Source: Dimorphilus gyrociliatus (lineage: Eukaryota; Animalia; Annelida). From it: a stretch of DNA of 64,000 nucleotides. Shown piece by piece: positions 26,072 to 57,100 of the stretch (the stretch's first letter is position 1; the number at the start of each line of letters is the position of its first letter). The stretch covers positions 3,410,001 to 3,474,000 of the forward strand of contig CAJFCJ010000001.1 of NCBI GenBank assembly GCA_904063045.1, given 5' to 3'. The notes below the pieces were generated by a model that was given only the letters and a program-made list of their open reading frames with translations, was not told where the DNA came from and searched no databases. Made by a program: the position numbers and the translations under genes.

Positions 26072-29000
26072 TCATGAAAATGTCATTAATGATCCTTTTA
26101 TCTCTTTAAATGTAGGTCGTTTTGATGCGTCTAAATTCCAGCACTTTTCCATTATATTATGCATTTCCGTGGGACAATCTTCCGGTGGTTCCATTCTATA
26201 TCCCTTTTGTACATGTTCTGGCACCTCTGTTAAATGAATACGTGGGTAGGGAACTCTTCCGAATGAATACAATTCCCATAAAAATATTCCATAGCTCCAT
26301 ACATCGGAGTGACTGGTAAATTTATTGCTTTTGAGCGCTTCTGGAGCTGTCCATTTGATAGGAAATTTACCACCTTGAACTTCGGCCTGAGCCTGTCTAG
26401 CCAACCCAAAATCAGTAACTTTAGCAACATTATGTTCAGATAAGAGAACATTCCTAGCAGCGAGGTCTCTGTGTACAACTGAATTTTCTTCAAGATAACA
26501 CATGGCTTCGCAAGTGTCTTTAGCAAATCCCAAAAGTTGGGATTTCTTAATTTTTGTCCTACCCCTTGACCGCAGAAAATCTATTAAGCTGCCCATTTCC
26601 ATAAATTCACTTACTATTAATGTCTTTTCTTTATTAACTATTCCCACCAATTTAACCAAATTTTTATGCTTAAGTGTCATCATAAAGCGAGCTTCTTTAA
26701 GGAATTCTCCAGCTTTGTTTTTATCGTGTAACGATTTAATGGCAACCTGTTAGCCAACAACAGAAAAGAAAAGGTCAGCATTTTTACAGAATAATCTCAT
26801 AAAAGATTATAAAAATAATTTTAGAAAAATTATAGCTATGTTAATAACCTTTTGATCTTTATAAATACCGCAATGAACCTCGCCGAATTCTCCTTTACCA
26901 ATACATTCGCCCACTTCTAATTCGTCGATATTGATCTCCCATTTATTTGTATCGTAAAGAGGACAAGGAATCTTTAATTCGGTTACTAATCCATTTGCGT
27001 CATTTCCGTAATAAGTTATCAATTCGGACAAATTATCAAAAAACACCTCCTCGTCAATTGTATATTTACCACCTTTTCTCAGCACATGGTAATTTTCAAC
27101 CTGGTTCAAATAGATTAAACAAAGAGTGAAATCGCCTGGATAGTTTGTACTGTCGCGAAGAAGAAAAGAACCGTCTTCACAATCGTTAAGTCTTCTAATT
27201 GCTTCTTCCCTACCAATATCACCGTGATACCAAGGTTTGCCAATGTGCGATCCATTCTTTTTATCCGAAGTTGGACCATTTTTACCCACGTAGTTGGCTG
27301 GGATCATTCCAGAGTTTCCAACTTCATTCATAGCTTGATACCACATGGGATCTCGTGTTGGACAAGTTATTTTTATTTTCTCTCCTTTTTTAAAAGATAG
27401 ATCCTCTTTTGATTTACCTTCAAAGTTGAATAGGCCGGTAACTTCGTCACCTAAAAAGTTTAAAAGAAACACATCAGTCAAGTATCAAATGTTAATTTAC
27501 AATTAGACGCTTAACAGGAGAAACTATTGAAAACAAAAGGAAATAAAATTTATTGCAGCATACGAAAAGTTTAATTTGGAGATAATTAATTCTTAGTATA
27601 TAATAGTATTGAAATAGTTTCGCTATTAAAAAAAACATTACAAAGATGAGGAAAACCAGAAGAAAAGGAAAGAAAAAACGCAAAGAAAACAGAATACAAT
27701 ATTATTTGTTTATATAAGATATTCACAAGCATCCTTTTCTTTTCTCTTTTGCTTTCAGTCGTCTCTAACGAATTTTTACAGCTTAACCCCAACAAGATAG
27801 AAGAGAAATGAATAAAAGTAATAAAATCTACGTTTCATGGGTCTTTTAGTCGTAAAAGTCTGTCTTTATCAAAATTTGAAATTCTTTGTAGATTATCTTT
27901 CGCAAACATTGTAATATTATTTAAAAACTATAAAAAATTTTTTGATATTCATTCCATATAGAACGAAAAGCTGAGCGCAATTGGTTAACGACATTATCTC
28001 TTTTGTTAATATATATAAATATATAGATAGATATGTATGGATAAACTGATTAGATGAAATATTAAATCAGGCAATCTAATAATTTTTTAATAATACACTA
28101 TACATACATCTATCTATACATGTTCTTCTAAAAACCTTTACTTAATTATTCCGATTAAGTGAGATCCGTTTTTCCTTAATTTCGCTAATTAGTTTTTAAG
28201 GGTCAAGTAAATTACAACGGCCGAGTGAAGGAGAAAATCCCATTTTCTATCTAATAAAATTACTATTAGGAGATGATTTTAGGAGATGATTTTAGTAGAG
28301 AATTGTCGAAAAAATATACGAAGAGACATTTTAAGAAGCAGGTAAAAACTCTAAAATTTAGAAATAATCAACAAGAGAACCTCTTTTTTCAAGTGAACGC
28401 ACACTAGAGTAATTGTTCATATTTATAGAAAAAAAAAGTAATATTAAACATAGAGCGATCAATAATGACTTGCGGAATCTTTGAAAAATATCGAATGAAT
28501 AGCGTGACAATATTGTAAACTTCTTACTATCTAGAAAAAATGTTTTTTTTATATTTAACACATTATGCCTAGTTAACTCTAATATAAATGATTATTTACA
28601 GCATATATATATATTAATTATTGCAAGGGAATAGCGTACTAAAAGTGATGATAAAATGAAAAAAATTGTTATTGTTGGATGGAAAACACCAATGTAGAAA
28701 GTTATAGGCATGCCCATATATCTATATTCCTTAATAGTTATATTATATATGAATATCAAACCTATATCTTTCGATAGGCCCTTGTTGATACAACATTTCG
28801 AATGATTCATTTGATTTTTTTTTATTTTTTTTACTGCCTCTGCTTCTTATTTTGTTGCTTATCAAGAATATTAGTTTTTATGCTAGATTCTTCTAAAGGA
28901 TTGTAATAGAAATTTTAAAATGATATTCAAAATCTAATTATCATTGCATGCTGTTAATACAAATTCGTCTATAAGTGAATTATTATATAAAAGATATCGT

Positions 29001-34715: not shown

Positions 34716-36262
34716 TTAAGATGTATCAGCTGACATATGCTTTGTTAAGAATTTCATCATTCCAAACATTTTAACCCTTTTTCTGCCTGTAAATAAAATA
34801 TATTACAATAATTATCTTTCTGGAAAGAAAATCATGAAAGGAAACTTACCAAAAACTTCCTGAAGAGCGTCATCACATAGGGTAAATTGCTTGTTTCGAG
34901 GATCCTAATTGTATAATTATTTCATTCGTTATAGTGGAAATAAACTAAAGTAATGGTTGCAAGATTTTTACCTGAAGGTTCTTTTCCTTAACATAACCCC
35001 ACATTCTCTTGACAACTTCACTTCTTGGTAATTTCTCTGCTCCAACAACTTTAGCTAAAGCTTCAGAGAGAACAAGGTCTGCGTTGTATCCAGTTTTCTC
35101 TACAATGGTAAGAAAAAGACTTTCAGTGTCATACTGTTCGTATTCTTCACAAGCTACATCCATTTATATACACAAATTATATAATTCTTATTTCTATCAA
35201 ATACAACAGTTGGTAATTGTCGGGGAATTTAGTTTGTAAAGGTACGGTTAAGGTTAAGAATTAGGATAGGAAAGGTTTTGCCTAATAGGACATTCTAATC
35301 ATAGAAAAATTGTAACATTCACGAAACAAAGTTACAGTATACAATATCCTTACTTTTAACGGCTTTCTCTGGTTTGTCATTTGTTGTAGCGGCAGCTTTC
35401 TTCTTTGGTTTTGCTTTTGGCTTCTTTGGTGCTTCGTCGTCGTCGTCACCATCCCACTAAAAAAAATGATAAAATCAATTTTAGCGATTTTTTAAATTGA
35501 AACGCAACGTCTCTAATGGCATTTTAATAAATTTATAATAATAATAAATAATTATTATTATACTTTTCTTTTTACTTACGTCGGAATCACTTTGATTTTT
35601 CTTCTTTTTCTTCAGTTTTGGTTCATCATCATCGCTGGCCTAGAAATATAAACAGATTACATTATAGAATAATTTTAATATATCGAACGTACAGCTTCTT
35701 CTGGCTCTGAGGCAGACGAATCATGCGCCTCTTTCTCTTCCATTTCTTCAAGACATGCCATAACGAGATCGTCTATTTGCTGTTTTCTATTTTGTAATAA
35801 AGAAAAAATATTATACTATTTATTTCTACAGATTTTGTAAGAATTCATATATTAATTTTCTAAGAGATATGTGGAAAAAGAAGAAAAAAGTTCTTTTTTT
35901 TCCCTAATATAGAAGTGAATAACATTCGGTTAATTATTCTTTATATATATATATATATTTTTATACATTTATTAATAAAAATCTATTTTTTTTTAAACTA
36001 TTTCATAAATTTTTCTAAAATTTATTGCTTACTTTTCCAAAAGATCTTCGTCGTACTTTTCTTCTAATTCCTTTCTCACCTTCTTGGCAGAAATAGAGTT
36101 CAGGTCGGCGCCTTTCAAAATTTCTATAAAATCATAATAAAATGAATAAAAGCTATAACTGTTGTTACGAAAAACTATTCTTGAATTTTTTCCTTATCTT
36201 AAATTCTTAAATAGCAAACCTAAAATATCCTTCTTCAGTTTATTTTCTGTAATTTCCGACAT
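34716..36262 (-). CDS. DEK-C + SWIB/MDM2 domain protein (UAF30/Spp27/TRI1-like), 214 aa
   Basis: Eight exons: 36262-36220, 36123-36033, 35786-35693, 35639-35580, 35456-35354, 35099-34972, 34904-34850, 34786-34716; 645 nt in frame. DEK-C: ILKGADLNSISAKKVRKELE. SWIB: LSEALAKVVG...PRSEVVKRMWGYVKEKNLQDPRNK...CDDAL. Confidence 0.92.
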
Positions 36263-45688: not shown

Positions 45689-48600
45689 GAGAGAGAGAGA
45701 GAAGGAAAGAAAGAAAGAAGGAAAGAGTGAGGAGAAAAGTAGGAAAAAAAGGAATATTATTAAAATTTGTATACATGTACTTATATATTAGTATATCTAT
45801 ATATATATTTACATGTATACTATTTATAACTAATATATTATTATTAGTAGTACTAATAGTAGTAAAAACAGTAATCATACCAATGTTTGCTACGTTTGAA
45901 GCTGCTCTATTCGTAGAAGTTAATTTCTCCTGATTTTGATTTGATTGAACGAATGTATTTTCTTCCTTTGTTATGCTCATATAAAATAACAAATCCGTCT
46001 TTTTCATTAGATGTCTAGGTCCCGGATTTAATTGGATGGTAGAACCGGAAATATCTTGTTGCTTAATTCCAACCAATGCAACACCGTATTTCCTATGAGC
46101 GTGAAATGAGGCATAATTAAAACTCTTTCCTTCGTATTCTTCGAAAAATTTCGATTTTCCCAAGACAATCTGATAGATTTCATTTCCGGAACATCTACCG
46201 TACAATCTCATCCAATTTTCATTCGAACTCTGCCCTTCAGCTCCTCGCGACGTATGTAAAAGAAGGGTAACGAGCGTCGAAGTACCGGGACAGAGACAAT
46301 TATTAGCTAATAAGGCATATTTGAATTCATCCTCACAAACAACGTGTTCGGCAAATTTAACGTGAATCTTATTCTCGGGTCTGAACATTTGAACGTACTG
46401 TGGAACGTATGGAGCGAAATCCTTTACAGCCCAAGACCTATAAAGACATAAAAGGAACGAAATGGAAATCGTATAAAAACGAGTAACGCGGGAAAAATAG
46501 AAAGAAAAGGGAAAAGCGAAAATATAAAGAACTGATTAGCGTAAATTAATCCTACATTGTAATTAATTATTGATAAAATACGTTCCGTTACGATGAATAT
46601 ACTATATTTTCTATATATAAATATATAGTTTTCTGTATGCAATGGTGTATTGTACTGATTATATTCCTAATTTACTATTATAATGGTTAGCGCCTCTTTC
46701 TATCATCTTTGTGCGCTTTCCTTCGCCCCCCCCCCTCCCCTACCCTTCCTCTCCTTCCCCGCCTCACACTCTTCTTTACTCTGCCTTCGTATCTCACTAA
46801 CACATGCATCATCTATTTTACTGTGAATATACATCTTGGAAAAGATATATATTAATACTTATAGATCTTCTTTTTCCTCCTTTTAACATTACCCCTTTAC
46901 GCTTAAACTCTTATTATGCCACCTTACCAGCCTATAATAGTAAGCCAACCGGAAAATTTGTGATTAATTACGCCTAAGATCCCTTTCTCCCTTCAACTCT
47001 CCCTCCCTCATTCAATACTAGAATTTTGCTGTTAGATGTATCATTGCCCTATTATACTTAAAGGGGCCATTTTGTAATCAAACTAATGGGTTAATTTATA
47101 CCTGAGAATTGTATGCTGATCGGCAGCCGTTCTATCAGTAATATTTCTTTCGGCAATGACAAAACAGGCTTCGGCTTCCTGCATTCGACACCTATTTAAA
47201 TCTGAATCCTTCAGGGCAGATCCTTGTATATAGATTACTCTAGCCGCCCATATGGGAACTTGAAGTATCATTTTCATTGTAGCATCCAATTCGCAAGGAG
47301 ATAATAAGACAACGTAGTAATGCTGCAGTTTAGGGTGAGCGTAAAATTCGTTGAGAAAATCCATAATTACATCGGCGTGTAAGGTTGTCGTACAAAGAAC
47401 AACGTGCTTTTCATTTTGAGCTCTGTGACTACTATACGTTCCTCCTTGCTTCTGGCGTTCAATCCAAGTAAATGCCAATTGCTCGACTTGCGTCGGAAGT
47501 ACAATAAGAGCAGCGATAATAACCAACATCATAAATACTTTACTTGGCCATATATCAGGAACGACGTCACCATATCCAACAGTAGAAAAAGTTACAATAA
47601 CATACCAGACGCAGTCTATAAGATCCATCTGACGATTACCAGCCCTTTGTAGGTGTTGGATGCCGCAAATACTAATTAAAATAAGAGAAAAACCAACTGT
47701 ATTTCATAAATAATACACGAAAGATAGGAGGCAAAGTGAATTGAATTACGTAATGATGAACTAATTAGAAAAGACAAATCTGTTCCTCTCAACAACTCCT
47801 TTTAATGTTACTTAATAAGAAAGAACGAAAAGTGTTCGCTTAGGCAATTTAATTATGTTTAAATATATACTGTATATACAGCATTAATTTTTAGACGCCT
47901 ATTCCCATTTCCTTACTTCTCGTCCGTAAATTGTTTACCAAGTAAATAGTTGTAATATGGATAAATATAGAATATACATAGTTTATAAACCCTACTTGTG
48001 TCCCCTATACTACCCTCTATAATAATCTATCTCTCTATCTCTCTATCTATCTATCTGTCTGTCTGTCTGTCTATGTTTCTCTCACGCTCAATATACTATT
48101 ATAAAATACACGAAAGATATTGATAGTAAATTATCATTCTTCTCCGCTCCTCTTCTCCTATCTTAATATTCTATTTAATCAGATATGATCGTATCTGGAA
48201 AACGGTGCGAGTAAAACATCATTTAATACTATTTCTTCAATATTTTCAAACTTCGTCATTTACTTGATAAGTTAATATTTCTTCTTTTTTTATAGAATAG
48301 AGAAAAACTTGTCCAATCTTCTGTTGTCGATTAATTAGCTTCGTACGATTTCTATAAATAGGAAGAAGACTGAAAATGTTGAACCTCTCCTTACCCCTCC
48401 CCTTTCCTAAGGCCTTTTTTTTATCAGCAACAGAAAAGTGTCAAATCCTGTATAGGAAATGAGAGAGAAAGAGAGAGAAAGAATGAGTAGGAAAAAAGCT
48501 TAAATCTCTCTCTCCTCTCTCCGTCTTCTCATAAATAATAAAAAAATAAAAAAAGCTTGATAACTATATAAGTAAATATATGAATTATTAACCTTTTTGT

Positions 48601-48886
48601 TCCGTTTCTATTAACTATTTAGTATATGATATACAATGAGGTTGATATATACTGCAGTCTAGTTTAATCTTTACAGTACCCTACTGCAAAATATTTTGTT
48701 TTAGATTATTCTTTAAAGAGAAAAGTCTGTAGATTAGGTAAAGTAATCATTCTTTTGCCTTTTCTACTTCAAAGTATTGCTGGAAAAGTCGAACTGGGGC
48801 TCGTTTAAAAAATATCAATCAAAATGAAACAGCTTGAAGCAATTGCTGTATAAAGTAACGTAGTAACGTGCTTTCTCAGGCTCATC

Positions 48887-48931
<45 letters not shown>

Positions 48932-51900
48932 GAGAATGGATAAAAAAAAGAAAGAAAGAAGAAACACTCTACATATTCTGCAGTTTTAAATAAATGTAGA
49001 AAGAGAGAAGAATAGAAATCGCTTAACACTCTTGCATTAGCTTTTTAACATAAAGAGGAACAGTATAAATAATACATGTTTTGTCGTGTATAAAAGATAA
49101 CGGACTTTTTTTTTATAAAAACAAAAGATTAGCTAAAAGTTAAACCAGGATAAAATTCCCGTAGTAGGAAATATCCTGTTTTCTTTTAAAGTTTCTTTGC
49201 ATGTAAAAAACATAAAGGATAAAAAAAGGAGTAAGAAGTAAAGCCTTATTTTCTTTTTAACAATTTTCTAGCAAGGTAAACGGCTTTAGATAAATAAAAC
49301 GAGGAGAAATAAAGATAAAGAGAAAGAGACAGAGAGAAAGGGAATGGAATGAATTGAAGAAATAGTCTGCCAATTCGTTATTATAAACTTGTAAACTGGT
49401 AAACAACTATCTTACTCTAAAAGCGTGCATAAATTTAGTCAATTAGAATTACCTAGTGAAAAAAAGGCAGAGAAAAGTAGCTATTAGGATCATCATGTGA
49501 TGCGAGAGAGCAGACTGAGACTTGAGCATGGCTCTATGTAAATCGTTCTGTGAGGAAAAGTCAATCAGTTAAGCAATACGTGTTTCGTTAATAACAAAGC
49601 AAAGATCTTATCATTTATATTGTTAGTGTGAAAAGCTAAAACAAAACAATAAACTCAACACACACACACACATTACGCTATACACAGTGTGTTCTGTATA
49701 CATGCATATATTAATATAGCACGTTATCTACTAAATATGTTAATTAGTTAATTAACTAATTAATTAATTAAGCATTTAATAAAATAATAAGAGTAATCAA
49801 TTGAAAAGATGTAATGGAACAAGAGTGATGCTGATTCTGCAAAGAAATCTCACCCGGTAAAGAAGAAACAAATATTCATGACGACAAGCAAGACAATTTT
49901 GTACATAAGCGAATCATGCATCAAACTCGAGCTAAGGCTTTTCTGGATAAGAAAAAAATATATACATTTATATAAATTTTTCACTTTGTCTCGCAGCTAA
50001 AGAGAGACTGAAACAGAACGAGATCAGACAGAAAAAGATAGACCTAGCCAACAGACGACTAAATGAAAAGGAACTATGGAATGGGTTAGTACAGTAGTTT
50101 GTCAGAAGAATTTGATGAATAGAAAACAAAAATACTTACAAACATACTTTCCAAAGCAGCTTTAGCCAACCAACAGTTTAAGAAGACGGGAACAAACAAG
50201 TTTCGTATTGGAAAGTAGAAAATCTGAGTTGATGCATCAATTTTATAAAGGCGATATATACTGTATTATATACTGCATATATAAATATACTAATATATCT
50301 ATATATAATATAGTGTGGATTAATTGAACAAATGAACGAAATAATAAATAAATGAATAAAAAGATGAATAGGTTAATGAATAATTTAACGCTTACCGTAA
50401 TAATAAAAGGTACTGTATTAACTATTTCGAGAAAGAATACTGGACTTAAAATTTGCTGGATGATGTTGCCTTTATAGCCAAGGTAAGTCAAGAGTAACTG
50501 TTCCGCTAGACTAATTATAGCAACAGTCACTTGTATAGCCCAAAGCCATTGATTTCTATTCACCCACAACAGTAATTTCCAATCGATAGTTTGATTTTGT
50601 CTAAATAATTCGGCTGGCATTTCGGATTTTGTAAAATTCCAACAGGTTTCCGATTGAAATGGTACTGGATAGCATTCAATAGTTTTTGGATTATCCATAC
50701 TAACCCTTACTATGTATAATACGCATGATAACAATTTTATAAATAGATTAAACAATCTTATTCTTAGGCTTGATCTTTGATTTTTTATAAAATATACTTG
50801 GAGTCTTTCCTTGAATGATTTTTCATTCGTAAAGAATTCCACTCGCACCCTGTTCAAAGGAAAAAAGAAAGAGACAGATAATGAAAATTATCAGTTAACA
50901 AGTAAATCAATATTCCATGTATATGATAATATAAGGCGCAAACAATGTATCTGACAAAGAGCGGACAGAGAAAGGAAAGATGGAATAAAGAAATGGCAGA
51001 CAAATCGTTTCAATGAAGTGAATTGGCTTGAATACAATATACAGTATACTAATATACATATATATATATATATATTGTATATCTATGCGAATGCTTACTT
51101 TCATTCTATTTTTCTTATTTAACACTTTTATCCTTTTCTTTGTTTATTGCCTCTTAATAAAAGAGTTTATTCAAATAGAACAGAAAAGAGACGCTGCTTC
51201 TCTTTTCATTACTTTCTACTTTTTATTTGTATTATGTTTCCTAGAAAGTTATTAATTGACTTGGTTGGTATTACTGAAGGCGGTGGACATAACAAGTGAA
51301 GCTATAATGAATTGGCGAAAATGAGCGGTGGCTACGAAGGAGAATGATATACTGTATAATATATATATGCATGTATGTATGCACACGTGTGTACAGATAT
51401 AGATATCAACGCAGAAAAGGAAAAGGGAGGAAGAGGGAGAAGAGAATGTCTATAAACATAGAAATATCTCTTTTTCTCCTCTTTCTTTCATCAATTCACT
51501 CGCGTATTTTTGTATATCAATCCACTTTTCTGTCTAACTATTCGTCTAACTAACTCTAAGGATTGATCAATGGACTGTCTTTTTCCTTTCAGGTGTTCTT
51601 TCTGGAAGGAAAATTAATGGAGGTGATTAAAACGAGTCAACTACACAAGAGGGAGACTATCTGAGATTATACACGACATGAAAATCATTATTTACATACG
51701 ATACCGTAGTAAGAGAGAGAGAGGAAAGGGGGGAAGTGGAGACGTAAAGAAGGAGAAGGGGATGAGGATAAATGGAATAATGTTGAAATTTGTTTAAAAA
51801 GAATTTTTTAAGAGTATACGAGTAAAAATTATGGAAAATCAATTTTTTCCAGTCTCGTCTAGTTACTTTGTGTCTCTCATAGGTCAATAAAAATTACGGC

Positions 51901-54140: not shown

Positions 54141-57100
54141 GTCTGCATTATAAACCTTTATTATTACCATTACTACTACTACCACTATTAGGGGTATTGT
54201 TACTACTGTAAATGGACAGAATCTATCAGATATCGCCTTTTCTTTCGCATTTTTCTTGTTAAAAGCGCTTTGCAGTAACCATTTATTTAGTCCATCTACT
54301 TTATCTATTCTATACATCATGTACTATATATGTGCATACTAAATCCTTTTCTATTAGGATATCTATGATAAATTCTATGCATACAATTATGGATTTTATA
54401 CATATCATGTTTATTTATATAGCCACCTAGATAATGAATCGCATAATATGGAAAAGCGTATATATATATATATACATTTGTTACCGATATTGCAATTAGT
54501 AGTAACACTTGAATATCAAAGAGATCGGGTCAATGAGTCGGTCGGGAAAAGAACACAACAACATAGACCTAAACGTTAATTTATAGACCAACATCGTTGT
54601 CTTAACATACAGTCGATCTGTTTTTGTAGGTGAAAAGAAATAGTCAGAATATCTTAGATACTAGACAAAAAAAGATGAACAAACTCTCTTATCCTCTAAC
54701 AGAAAGAAATTGAACTATTTCTCTTTTAATAGATGTTAAACATTTGGTTTAAACTACTAACTTTTCTTCGCTGGGAAATCGAAAAAAACCTGGAATTTCT
54801 AAAAATCCTTTTCCATGCTTTTCGGTTAGTTTATGATGGAAGAAGGGAACGTTTTCCTCCCTCTCTTGCAATTCCATGGCATCTGACTAAGGATCTCCTA
54901 GAACTAACCATCTTTGGCGGCATCTACCGTCTAAAACAATAATTTCTAAACGAAGCCATCTAGTTTAAACTCGAATTGATTGTTTAGCCAAATGCTACAT
55001 TCTGGGAATTTACTTAAAGAAGTTTTTCTTTTCTACGTCAGCATTTTGAAGCTTCAATTAATTGTCAAGTAGAAAAAACAACGTCAACCTGTTGACCAGC
55101 ACTCAATCACGAAGACAATTAATTATTCACTACTATGCAGGGTTTTCCCCTTTCAACCCTCAGGTAACTGCTAAACTAGTTTGATTAAGTAATATTTATC
55201 CGTATTGTTAGCCTCTCATAGAGGGAGGAAAGGTCAAGGGTCGAAGCGTTTAGTGGAAACGCTATAAACGCTCGCGTCATTCATTCATTTGCATGGAATG
55301 AAGAAGTGTAATTTAAGAGCGTCTATTTTTCATTTAAACGTCTAAAGATTTCCCTATACATTTCTCTGTTCACTTTGAAAATTTTATCAACTTTCTCCTT
55401 CCTAGAGAATCCCCTTTCAACACCGCATAACAACGAGAAAATATATACCTTCTCCTAGGATTGTTTTCCCATTTGCTCTACTCTTATATAACGCCCCCTA
55501 CCGGTAAATAATATTTTTTGATAAATGGGCTAAGTACAGATATAAAAAGCCTATAGTAATGATAGATTAATCAATACATAAGTGAAAAAGCTGGATTACA
55601 ATAACATTCTTTTTTCTTTTTCATTCTCTTTTCTAGACTCTTTTCTTTTGATATTAAAAAATAAAATAGTGCTGGTCTATCCAATACGAATTAAACTGTT
55701 ACGGACATTTTACACTTAAAACTAACGGTTTGTCCCAGAAAAAAGAGAGTAAGCAGAGATCGAAATGGAAGAATGGAGGAGGTTTTACAGTAATAGTAGT
55801 AATAGTACCACTACCACTACCACTACCAAAGGAGATACACATTGAGAGAGAGAGAGAGAGAGACAGAAATGGCCAACTGCCCCTACTAGATATTATATAT
55901 GTTGGATGGAGAAAAAAAGATATTAAGTAGCTAAATTGCTATAAAACGAACCTTTCTCTATATTCTTCTGTATCCAATAAATGCTCCAATTCTCCCATAT
56001 TTTCTATTCATCTATTCTCTTAATCTCAATGGGATGATGTGATTGTTTTTGTTTGGAAAATATAATTTTAGAAGACACTACTAACTGTTGTCTATAGAAG
56101 AAAGAAGGTGGCAGCACAACCACTCGACATACTCTCCCCCTCTCTCTCTCAGCAAACACATACACAACTCTTGCATAGAATGGTAGAGATCGATTTGGCC
56201 TAGATTTTGCAGTGTTTCCCGTAGCAATTTAACTATTATTATCACTTGAAATAATATATTTTCTTTAATATCGTTAGGTATTTTTTTAATACTTTTAATA
56301 ATTTCCTTAGAATCAAAAGCTAAGATGTAAAAAAAATGTATTTCTCTTTCTCTCTCTCTCTTTCTTTCTTTCTCTCTCTTTCTTTCTTTCTTCTGTCTAT
56401 CTATCTATCTATCTATCTATTACTCATTGGCCTATAATCTGCTCTTTTCTTGTCCATGTCTTTTTTTCTTTCTCAAACTCTTCATTTCTCTATTCCTTCT
56501 TTCCTCCTCCTCCTCCTCCTCCTTACTCTCTTTCTCTCTCGACTCTTTATAGCGACACTGTTCCAATAGGCCTATCGGTTTATGCCAAAATATATTAAGA
56601 TGGAATACTTAACGAGTAGTTGTAAGTGCTTATTCTACAAACGGATAGGGTAATAAATGACACTGCAAAGACTCTTTTTTATGGAATATATACACACGGG
56701 TATTATTTACATAATAAGAACTAATCATAATTATCCTTATGATAATTGAATTTCATTGTTAGAATAGCATGAAAGAGATATACTGTCTGCTACATCTACG
56801 CTTTCTTTGCCTTTTTAATCTTTCATTTTCGTTTATTATTTATACAGTTCCCATATATGCTTGCTATACTACATTACTTTATATGAACACGTGCGTGTTA
56901 GGTACACTATAATTCATGTTTTGTTCATTATACTTGCTCCAATAAAAGCGAGTACGTTATCAAAAATTATTCATTATCAACAACATTAATGGCATTATTA
57001 ATTATTGATTCTTTGTGAATAATAAACGAATTGGAGGCGAACCAATGTGAAATGGATAAAGTGTGAGAAATCCTTGAAAATACACTTTACTACTTCTCTT

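Follow-up and report, generated by a model that had tools for sequence, protein, structure and literature searches.

A gene assigned to the Slo2 (KCNT) potassium channels of the annelid Dimorphilus gyrociliatus holds two adjacent exons for the S4-S5 linker and S5 helix, here termed exon A and exon B, between its S4 exon and its pore exon. Exon B encodes the canonical segment and was recovered in RNA. Exon A encodes a divergent one. It is probably a duplicated S5 exon, specific to the lineage of this worm, that still functions as a rare or cell-restricted alternative to exon B, a reading that is held here with modest confidence. The analysis covered one window, a stretch of 64,000 nucleotides of genomic DNA, and all positions refer to this window.

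Structure of the Slo2 gene

The gene was located on the minus strand of the window (Table 1). By sequence comparison, it was assigned to the Slo2/KCNT channels, the sodium-activated-type K+ channel family. The pore exon matched KCNT1 structures with an E-value of 3e-78, compared with 6e-19 for Slo1, and the best-matching relatives of the gene carried the names KCNT1/2. Exon B aligned to KCNT1 residues 254-284 with an E-value of 6e-5 and scored 66 bits in a comparison with a profile built from 33 S5 exons. The initial annotation, which was made from the letters of the window, had named the gene as Slo2. This identification was upheld, and the coordinates, phases and peptides that it gave for the exons proved exact.

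The first coding exon ended at 54762 and was spliced to the acceptor at 50849, as indicated by an RNA contig end. Exons A and B each ran from phase 0 to phase 2 and were separated by an intron of 306 nt. They differed in length by 6 nt and were hence in frame with each other. The pore exon started in phase 2 at 47671, reading (S/G)ICGIQHL. Another loose RNA contig end was located at 50851, distinct from the end at 50849, and its partner sequence was absent from the window. An alternative first exon, like those of Slack-A/Slack-B, may lie behind it. Elsewhere on the minus strand, two long open frames resembled known gene types when judged by eye, one at 26075-27484 a CSK-type SH3-SH2-tyrosine kinase gene and one at 34948-36193 a SWIB/DEK-C-type gene.

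Table 1. Exons, splice sites and further features of the Slo2 gene, in window positions.
Feature	Position or sequence	Strand	Evidence
Slo2/KCNT-type K+ channel gene, compact	~54886 to 42465	minus	Exons placed by tblastn with arthropod Slo2 proteins
First coding exon seen (MELQEREEN...)	about 54762..54886	minus	Listed open reading frame; loose contig end at 50849 is an exact match to 54762-54790
N-terminal region through S1-S3 exon	50396..50849	minus	RNA contig, joint 50396/50223; tblastn with arthropod Slo2
S4 exon, 84 nt	50140..50223	minus	Phase 0 end ...ESMF, donor GTAAGT; RNA joints 50396/50223 and 50140/49547
Exon A, 89 nt, divergent S4-S5 linker/S5 copy (KSLSSS...CFFFT+G)	49854..49942	minus	Sequence; without RNA support
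Exon A splice sites	acceptor tttttttcttatccag, donor GTGAGA	minus	Both strong
Exon B, 95 nt, canonical S4-S5 linker/S5 (NDLHR...CLFFT+S)	49453..49547	minus	RNA joints on both sides
Exon B splice sites	acceptor ttttcctcacag, donor GTAATT	minus	
Pore exon: S5 end, pore helix, TVGYGD filter, S6, RCK1 start	47100..47671	minus	RNA contig 47100-47673
Intron stretch with cryptic or alternative donor at 48593	48593..48880	minus	Joint 47671/48593, one contig, depth 12

Representation of exons A and B in RNA

The usable RNA consisted of the assembled contigs, not the reads, of one transcriptome-like run (2017). A 660-nt contig with a depth of 176 comprised the joints 50396/50223, 50140/49547 and 49453/47671, which together make up the exon B isoform. 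Exon B was the default form in the messages. No RNA joint in the contigs of this single usable run involved exon A, including a joint 49854>49547 to exon B. RNA depth in these contigs was 0 across 49772-49903, which covers most of exon A. The same run that left this stretch empty yielded intron contigs with a depth of 12-16 in the intron between exon B and the pore exon. Since contigs lose rare variants, the absence of exon A contigs indicates low abundance and not absence. On a rough reading, exon A held a share of at most a few percent of the sampled messages. Four junctions had been put forward in the initial annotation as a check on the two exons. Both junctions of exon B, 50140>49547 and 49453>47671, were present in the contigs, and both junctions of exon A, 50140>49942 and 49854>47671, were absent from the contigs of this one run.

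Other sequence collections gave the same picture for exon A. A 60-aa peptide composed of the S4 end, exon A and the start of the pore returned no candidates in a protein word search. Neither the S4>A nor the A>pore junction string had an exact match among JGI metagenome contigs. A search for transcript fragments of the worm with the N-terminal exon as query retrieved distant relatives only.

A further joint connected the pore acceptor with a donor at 48593 (Table 1). The stretch that is spliced in this way was full of stops and is probably unproductive, and its donor resembles a cryptic site, a site of recursive splicing or the donor of a poison exon. The second RNA run was a marine metatranscriptome. 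It contained a 304-nt contig that was 98% identical to the pore exon (window 47372-47674) and no other piece of the gene, which suggests an origin from a close relative or another strain of the worm.

Reading frame and exclusivity

When exon A alone or exon B alone was spliced in, the reading frame was kept. Inclusion of both exons resulted in a frameshift with stops within exon B, upstream of many exon junctions, and omission of both resulted in a frameshift with stops early in the pore exon. Both frameshifts had been stated in the initial annotation. By this frame logic, only one of the two exons at a time would be possible in a productive message. The pair showed the features of mutually exclusive exons, namely adjacency, one intron position, equal phase, near-equal length, homology and consensus-like splice sites. 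The splice sites of exon A are predicted to be functional. The mutually exclusive switch that had been proposed for this locus was thus supported in part, in that the frames allow one exon at a time and exon B is used. The use of exon A was not seen in any RNA contig of the single usable run.

Two explanations for a mutual exclusion of the exons were rejected. Steric exclusion did not fit the 306-nt intron, and an incompatibility of U2 and U12 sites did not fit the donors, which were all of the GT[AG]A type, with none of the form [AG]TATCC. A search for docking and selector pairing, based on a single sequence, identified weak AT-rich inverted repeats with 70-76% complementarity and an overall fold z-score of -2. 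Convincing competing RNA pairing was not found in this pairing and fold search of the locus.

Homology of exon A and exon B

Open pseudo-exons served as controls for the relationship of exon A to exon B. They were flanked by AG and GT, had a length of 80-110 nt and a matching phase, and numbered 604 in the window, including A and B. Such pseudo-exons were common in the AT-rich window. Their density of 4.7 per kb per strand gives an expectation of about 11 for the S4-to-pore intron, and the phase and the AG/GT dinucleotides are therefore little evidence alone. The global similarity of exon A to exon B amounted to a BLOSUM score of 35, which was rank 2/604 with a z of about 5; the next best pseudo-exon scored 14. 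In an ungapped comparison anchored at the C-terminus, covering the last 20 aa at the donor, exon A scored 40 (z 5.5), and no control exceeded 11. Its pyrimidine tract and donor were matched by one other pseudo-exon (2/604 reached this level with exon A itself), and its splice signals exceeded those of exon B. The hydrophobic tail of exon A was in the top 1.7% of the pseudo-exons. The GC content was 0.37 in exon A and 0.28-0.32 in the flanking introns.

In three other species, the pseudo-exons located between S4 and the pore were also ranked by their similarity to exon A. The true S5 exon was ranked first in each, with scores of 35 in Owenia (next best 2), 37 in Tubulanus (next best 2) and 25 in Ruditapes (next best -10). 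The outlying position among the controls and the selection of the S5 exon in three species argue for a genuine homology between exon A and the S5 exon, though this homology is faint. Against the profile of 33 S5 exons, exon A reached 3.4 bits and rank 18 in the window. A search of the PDB with exon A gave no match, and about 20% of the residues were common to A and B. The description of exon A in the initial annotation, as a divergent homologue of exon B with good splice sites that keeps the hydrophobic helix and C-x-F-F-T but loses the NDLHR linker, was in line with these results.

Coding constraint on exon A

Codon positions of A and B were compared in an alignment anchored at the donor. Identity at second positions was 63%, exceeding all 602 controls in a small sample of about 30 codons. 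First positions were 37% and third positions 23% identical, with a control mean of 25-27%, and the introns flanking A and B were identical at random level. The second-position signal is partly due to the hydrophobic helix that is coded by both exons. Neutral decay to the point at which third positions and introns are random would have left neither the second positions nor the frame and splice sites intact, which points to a long coding constraint. The pattern argues for exon A having been maintained as coding sequence over most of the time since the duplication.

Distribution of the duplication

A 95-nt S5 exon with identical boundaries was present in the annelid Owenia, the nemertean Tubulanus and the bivalve Ruditapes. 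In Lingula and Liolophura, the gene extended over more than 100 kb. A second S5-like exon was absent from the S4-to-pore interval and the rest of the locus in all three species. An orthologue of exon A in the Slo2 introns of other annelids and molluscs, for which the initial annotation had suggested a search, was thus not recovered in these loci. A set of annotated Slo2 isoforms from other animals, numbering more than 150, contained no alternative S5, and the S4-S5/S5 segment was identical within each species. This set comprised Lineus, Tubulanus, Octopus, Mytilus, oysters, scallops, crustaceans, insects, Pocillopora and acoels. As no second copy was present in the three lophotrochozoan loci or the annotated isoforms, the duplication of A and B would be specific to the lineage of the worm or to a narrower annelid group.

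The NDLHR linker motif, lost in exon A, is nearly invariant from corals to humans. It was also missing in the Slo2 proteins of the acoels Symsagittifera and Convolutriloba and in two transcript-derived relatives, and its loss alone therefore does not mean a dead protein. A second type of Slo2 paralogue, in which the linker reads NDLHLT(K/R)QRFQT, occurred in molluscs such as Lottia and Tegillarca.

Tandem repeats were observed at two other Slo2 genes. In Owenia fusiformis, positions 78025-81060 and 81791-83387 of the Slo2 locus were occupied by tandem units that comprise exon-intron junctions. One unit of 49 nt, in which the final 30 nt of the S4 exon are joined to its 5' splice site, was present in 62 tandem copies, and a 115-nt unit, consisting of a piece of the selectivity-filter exon and its donor, in 14 copies. 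The units represent an artefact of the assembly or, alternatively, satellites that originated at exon-intron junctions. In an old Slo2 model of Lingula, a 29-residue segment preceding S1 occurred twice in tandem at residues about 400-470, which may go back to a duplicated exon with both copies included, or to an erroneous assembly.

Alternative explanations for exon A

Exon A is best explained as a true copy that arose by an old tandem duplication of the exon for the S4-S5 linker and S5 and that selection would have kept open, hydrophobic and splice-competent. It is possible, if rather unlikely, that exon A is instead a relic, a duplicated S5 exon that was once or briefly used and is now silent, with no disabling mutation yet. 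A relic would be consistent with the lack of exon A in the RNA contigs of the single usable run, with the absence of a second exon from the other lophotrochozoan loci and annotated isoforms, and with the radical divergence of exon A, including the lost NDLHR, the low profile score and the failed PDB search. It fits poorly with splice signals that are stronger than those of exon B. It is also at odds with the codon-position pattern, in which third positions and flanking introns were randomised, yet the frame, the splice sites and the second positions were kept. Neutral decay over the distance between A and B would have erased these, so that any silencing must have been recent. The initial annotation had regarded a duplicate as dead if no reads splice exon A and no orthologous exon is conserved. 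Neither splicing of exon A nor an orthologous exon was observed, in thin data, but the codon-position pattern argues against a long-dead copy.

Two further explanations were considered. Exon A could act as a poison exon that is included together with exon B and, by the resulting frameshift and decay, tunes the amount of channel with no second protein being made. The position of the stops upstream of many exon junctions and the strong splice sites would suit this function, and decay-prone products are scarce in steady-state RNA, in agreement with the empty contigs. Protein-like conservation is unneeded in a poison exon, yet exon A keeps its frame, the helix, C-x-F-F-T and the second-position identity to exon B, and the joint of exon A to exon B was not seen in the contigs. 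This function was considered improbable. The last explanation takes exon A for a fortuitous open frame in an AT-rich intron, of no common origin with exon B, and would agree with the high density of pseudo-exons and with the profile and PDB searches, which do not recognise exon A. A chance frame is nevertheless hardly credible, given that exon A stands out among the 604 pseudo-exons by its likeness to B, by its splice signals and by its hydrophobic tail, and picks the true S5 exon in each of Owenia, Tubulanus and Ruditapes. The joint probability of these properties was estimated at roughly 1e-4.

Predicted use of exon A and the resulting channel

If exon A is a functional alternative, productive messages would carry exactly one exon, A or B, and nonsense-mediated decay would clear the messages with both or neither. 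The use of exon A would be rare, or limited to few cells or stages, and the exclusion is likely to be achieved by regulators together with frame surveillance. In the encoded channel, the pore-side end of S5 (C-x-F-F-T) and the hydrophobic helix would be kept, and a serine-rich K-S-L-S-S would replace NDLHR. When the two linkers were aligned by eye with gaps, the one of exon A retained its hydrophobic face, with L, L and M in place of L, I and L. Altered gating would be expected from the linker of exon A. The chances appear evenly balanced that a small number of cells or stages of the worm produce a second Slo2 channel, with the whole S4-S5 linker and S5 swapped and NDLHR missing.

Comparison with known exon switches

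Tandem mutually exclusive exons in membrane segments are known from Nav channels (exon 5N/5A) and from Cav1.2 (exon 8/8a). Like these, A and B are adjacent homologous exons of near-equal length and the same phase that encode a membrane segment. The Nav and Cav pairs are highly similar and conserved in many species, whereas A and B share about 20% of their residues and the pair was absent from the other lophotrochozoans tested. The nearest precedent is Slo1 (BK, KCNMA1), in which exon 9 and alt9 are mutually exclusive and alt9 shifts the voltage dependence (Soom et al. 2008, as cited in PMC11758846). It resembles the present pair in that tandem homologous exons of a Slo-family gene are used singly and form part of the gating core, and there the swap shifts gating. 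It differs in that exon 9/alt9 is located at S6 and the linker to RCK1 of a vertebrate gene with both forms in RNA, whereas the pair described here covers S4-S5 and S5 and one form was seen. Functionally different Slo2-type channels from one gene are known as the Slack-A/Slack-B N-terminal variants of KCNT1 (PMC3850776). These arise from alternative first exons and concern the cytoplasmic N-terminus, in contrast to the duplicated cassette within the membrane domain formed by A and B. Full-text literature searches retrieved no paper on a duplicated S5 exon or an S5 exon switch in KCNT/Slo2, in agreement with the initial annotation, which had known of no such description.

The segment encoded by A and B is sensitive to small changes in the human channel. 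The KCNT1 variants V271F and L274I raise the current and change the activation kinetics (PMC5754647), and according to the numbering from the alignment of exon B to KCNT1, both positions fall within the homologous segment. Since single substitutions there have such effects, a swap of the whole segment should change gating. Through changed gating, the same two variants in this segment cause severe infant epilepsy. If exon A is used as proposed, the worm would possess a natural switch of the gating core for which no description is known from KCNT/Slo2 genes. How far this segment can change in a working channel would be apparent from such a natural swap of the S4-S5 linker and S5, and the A and B isoforms would be a ready-made pair for structure-function study.
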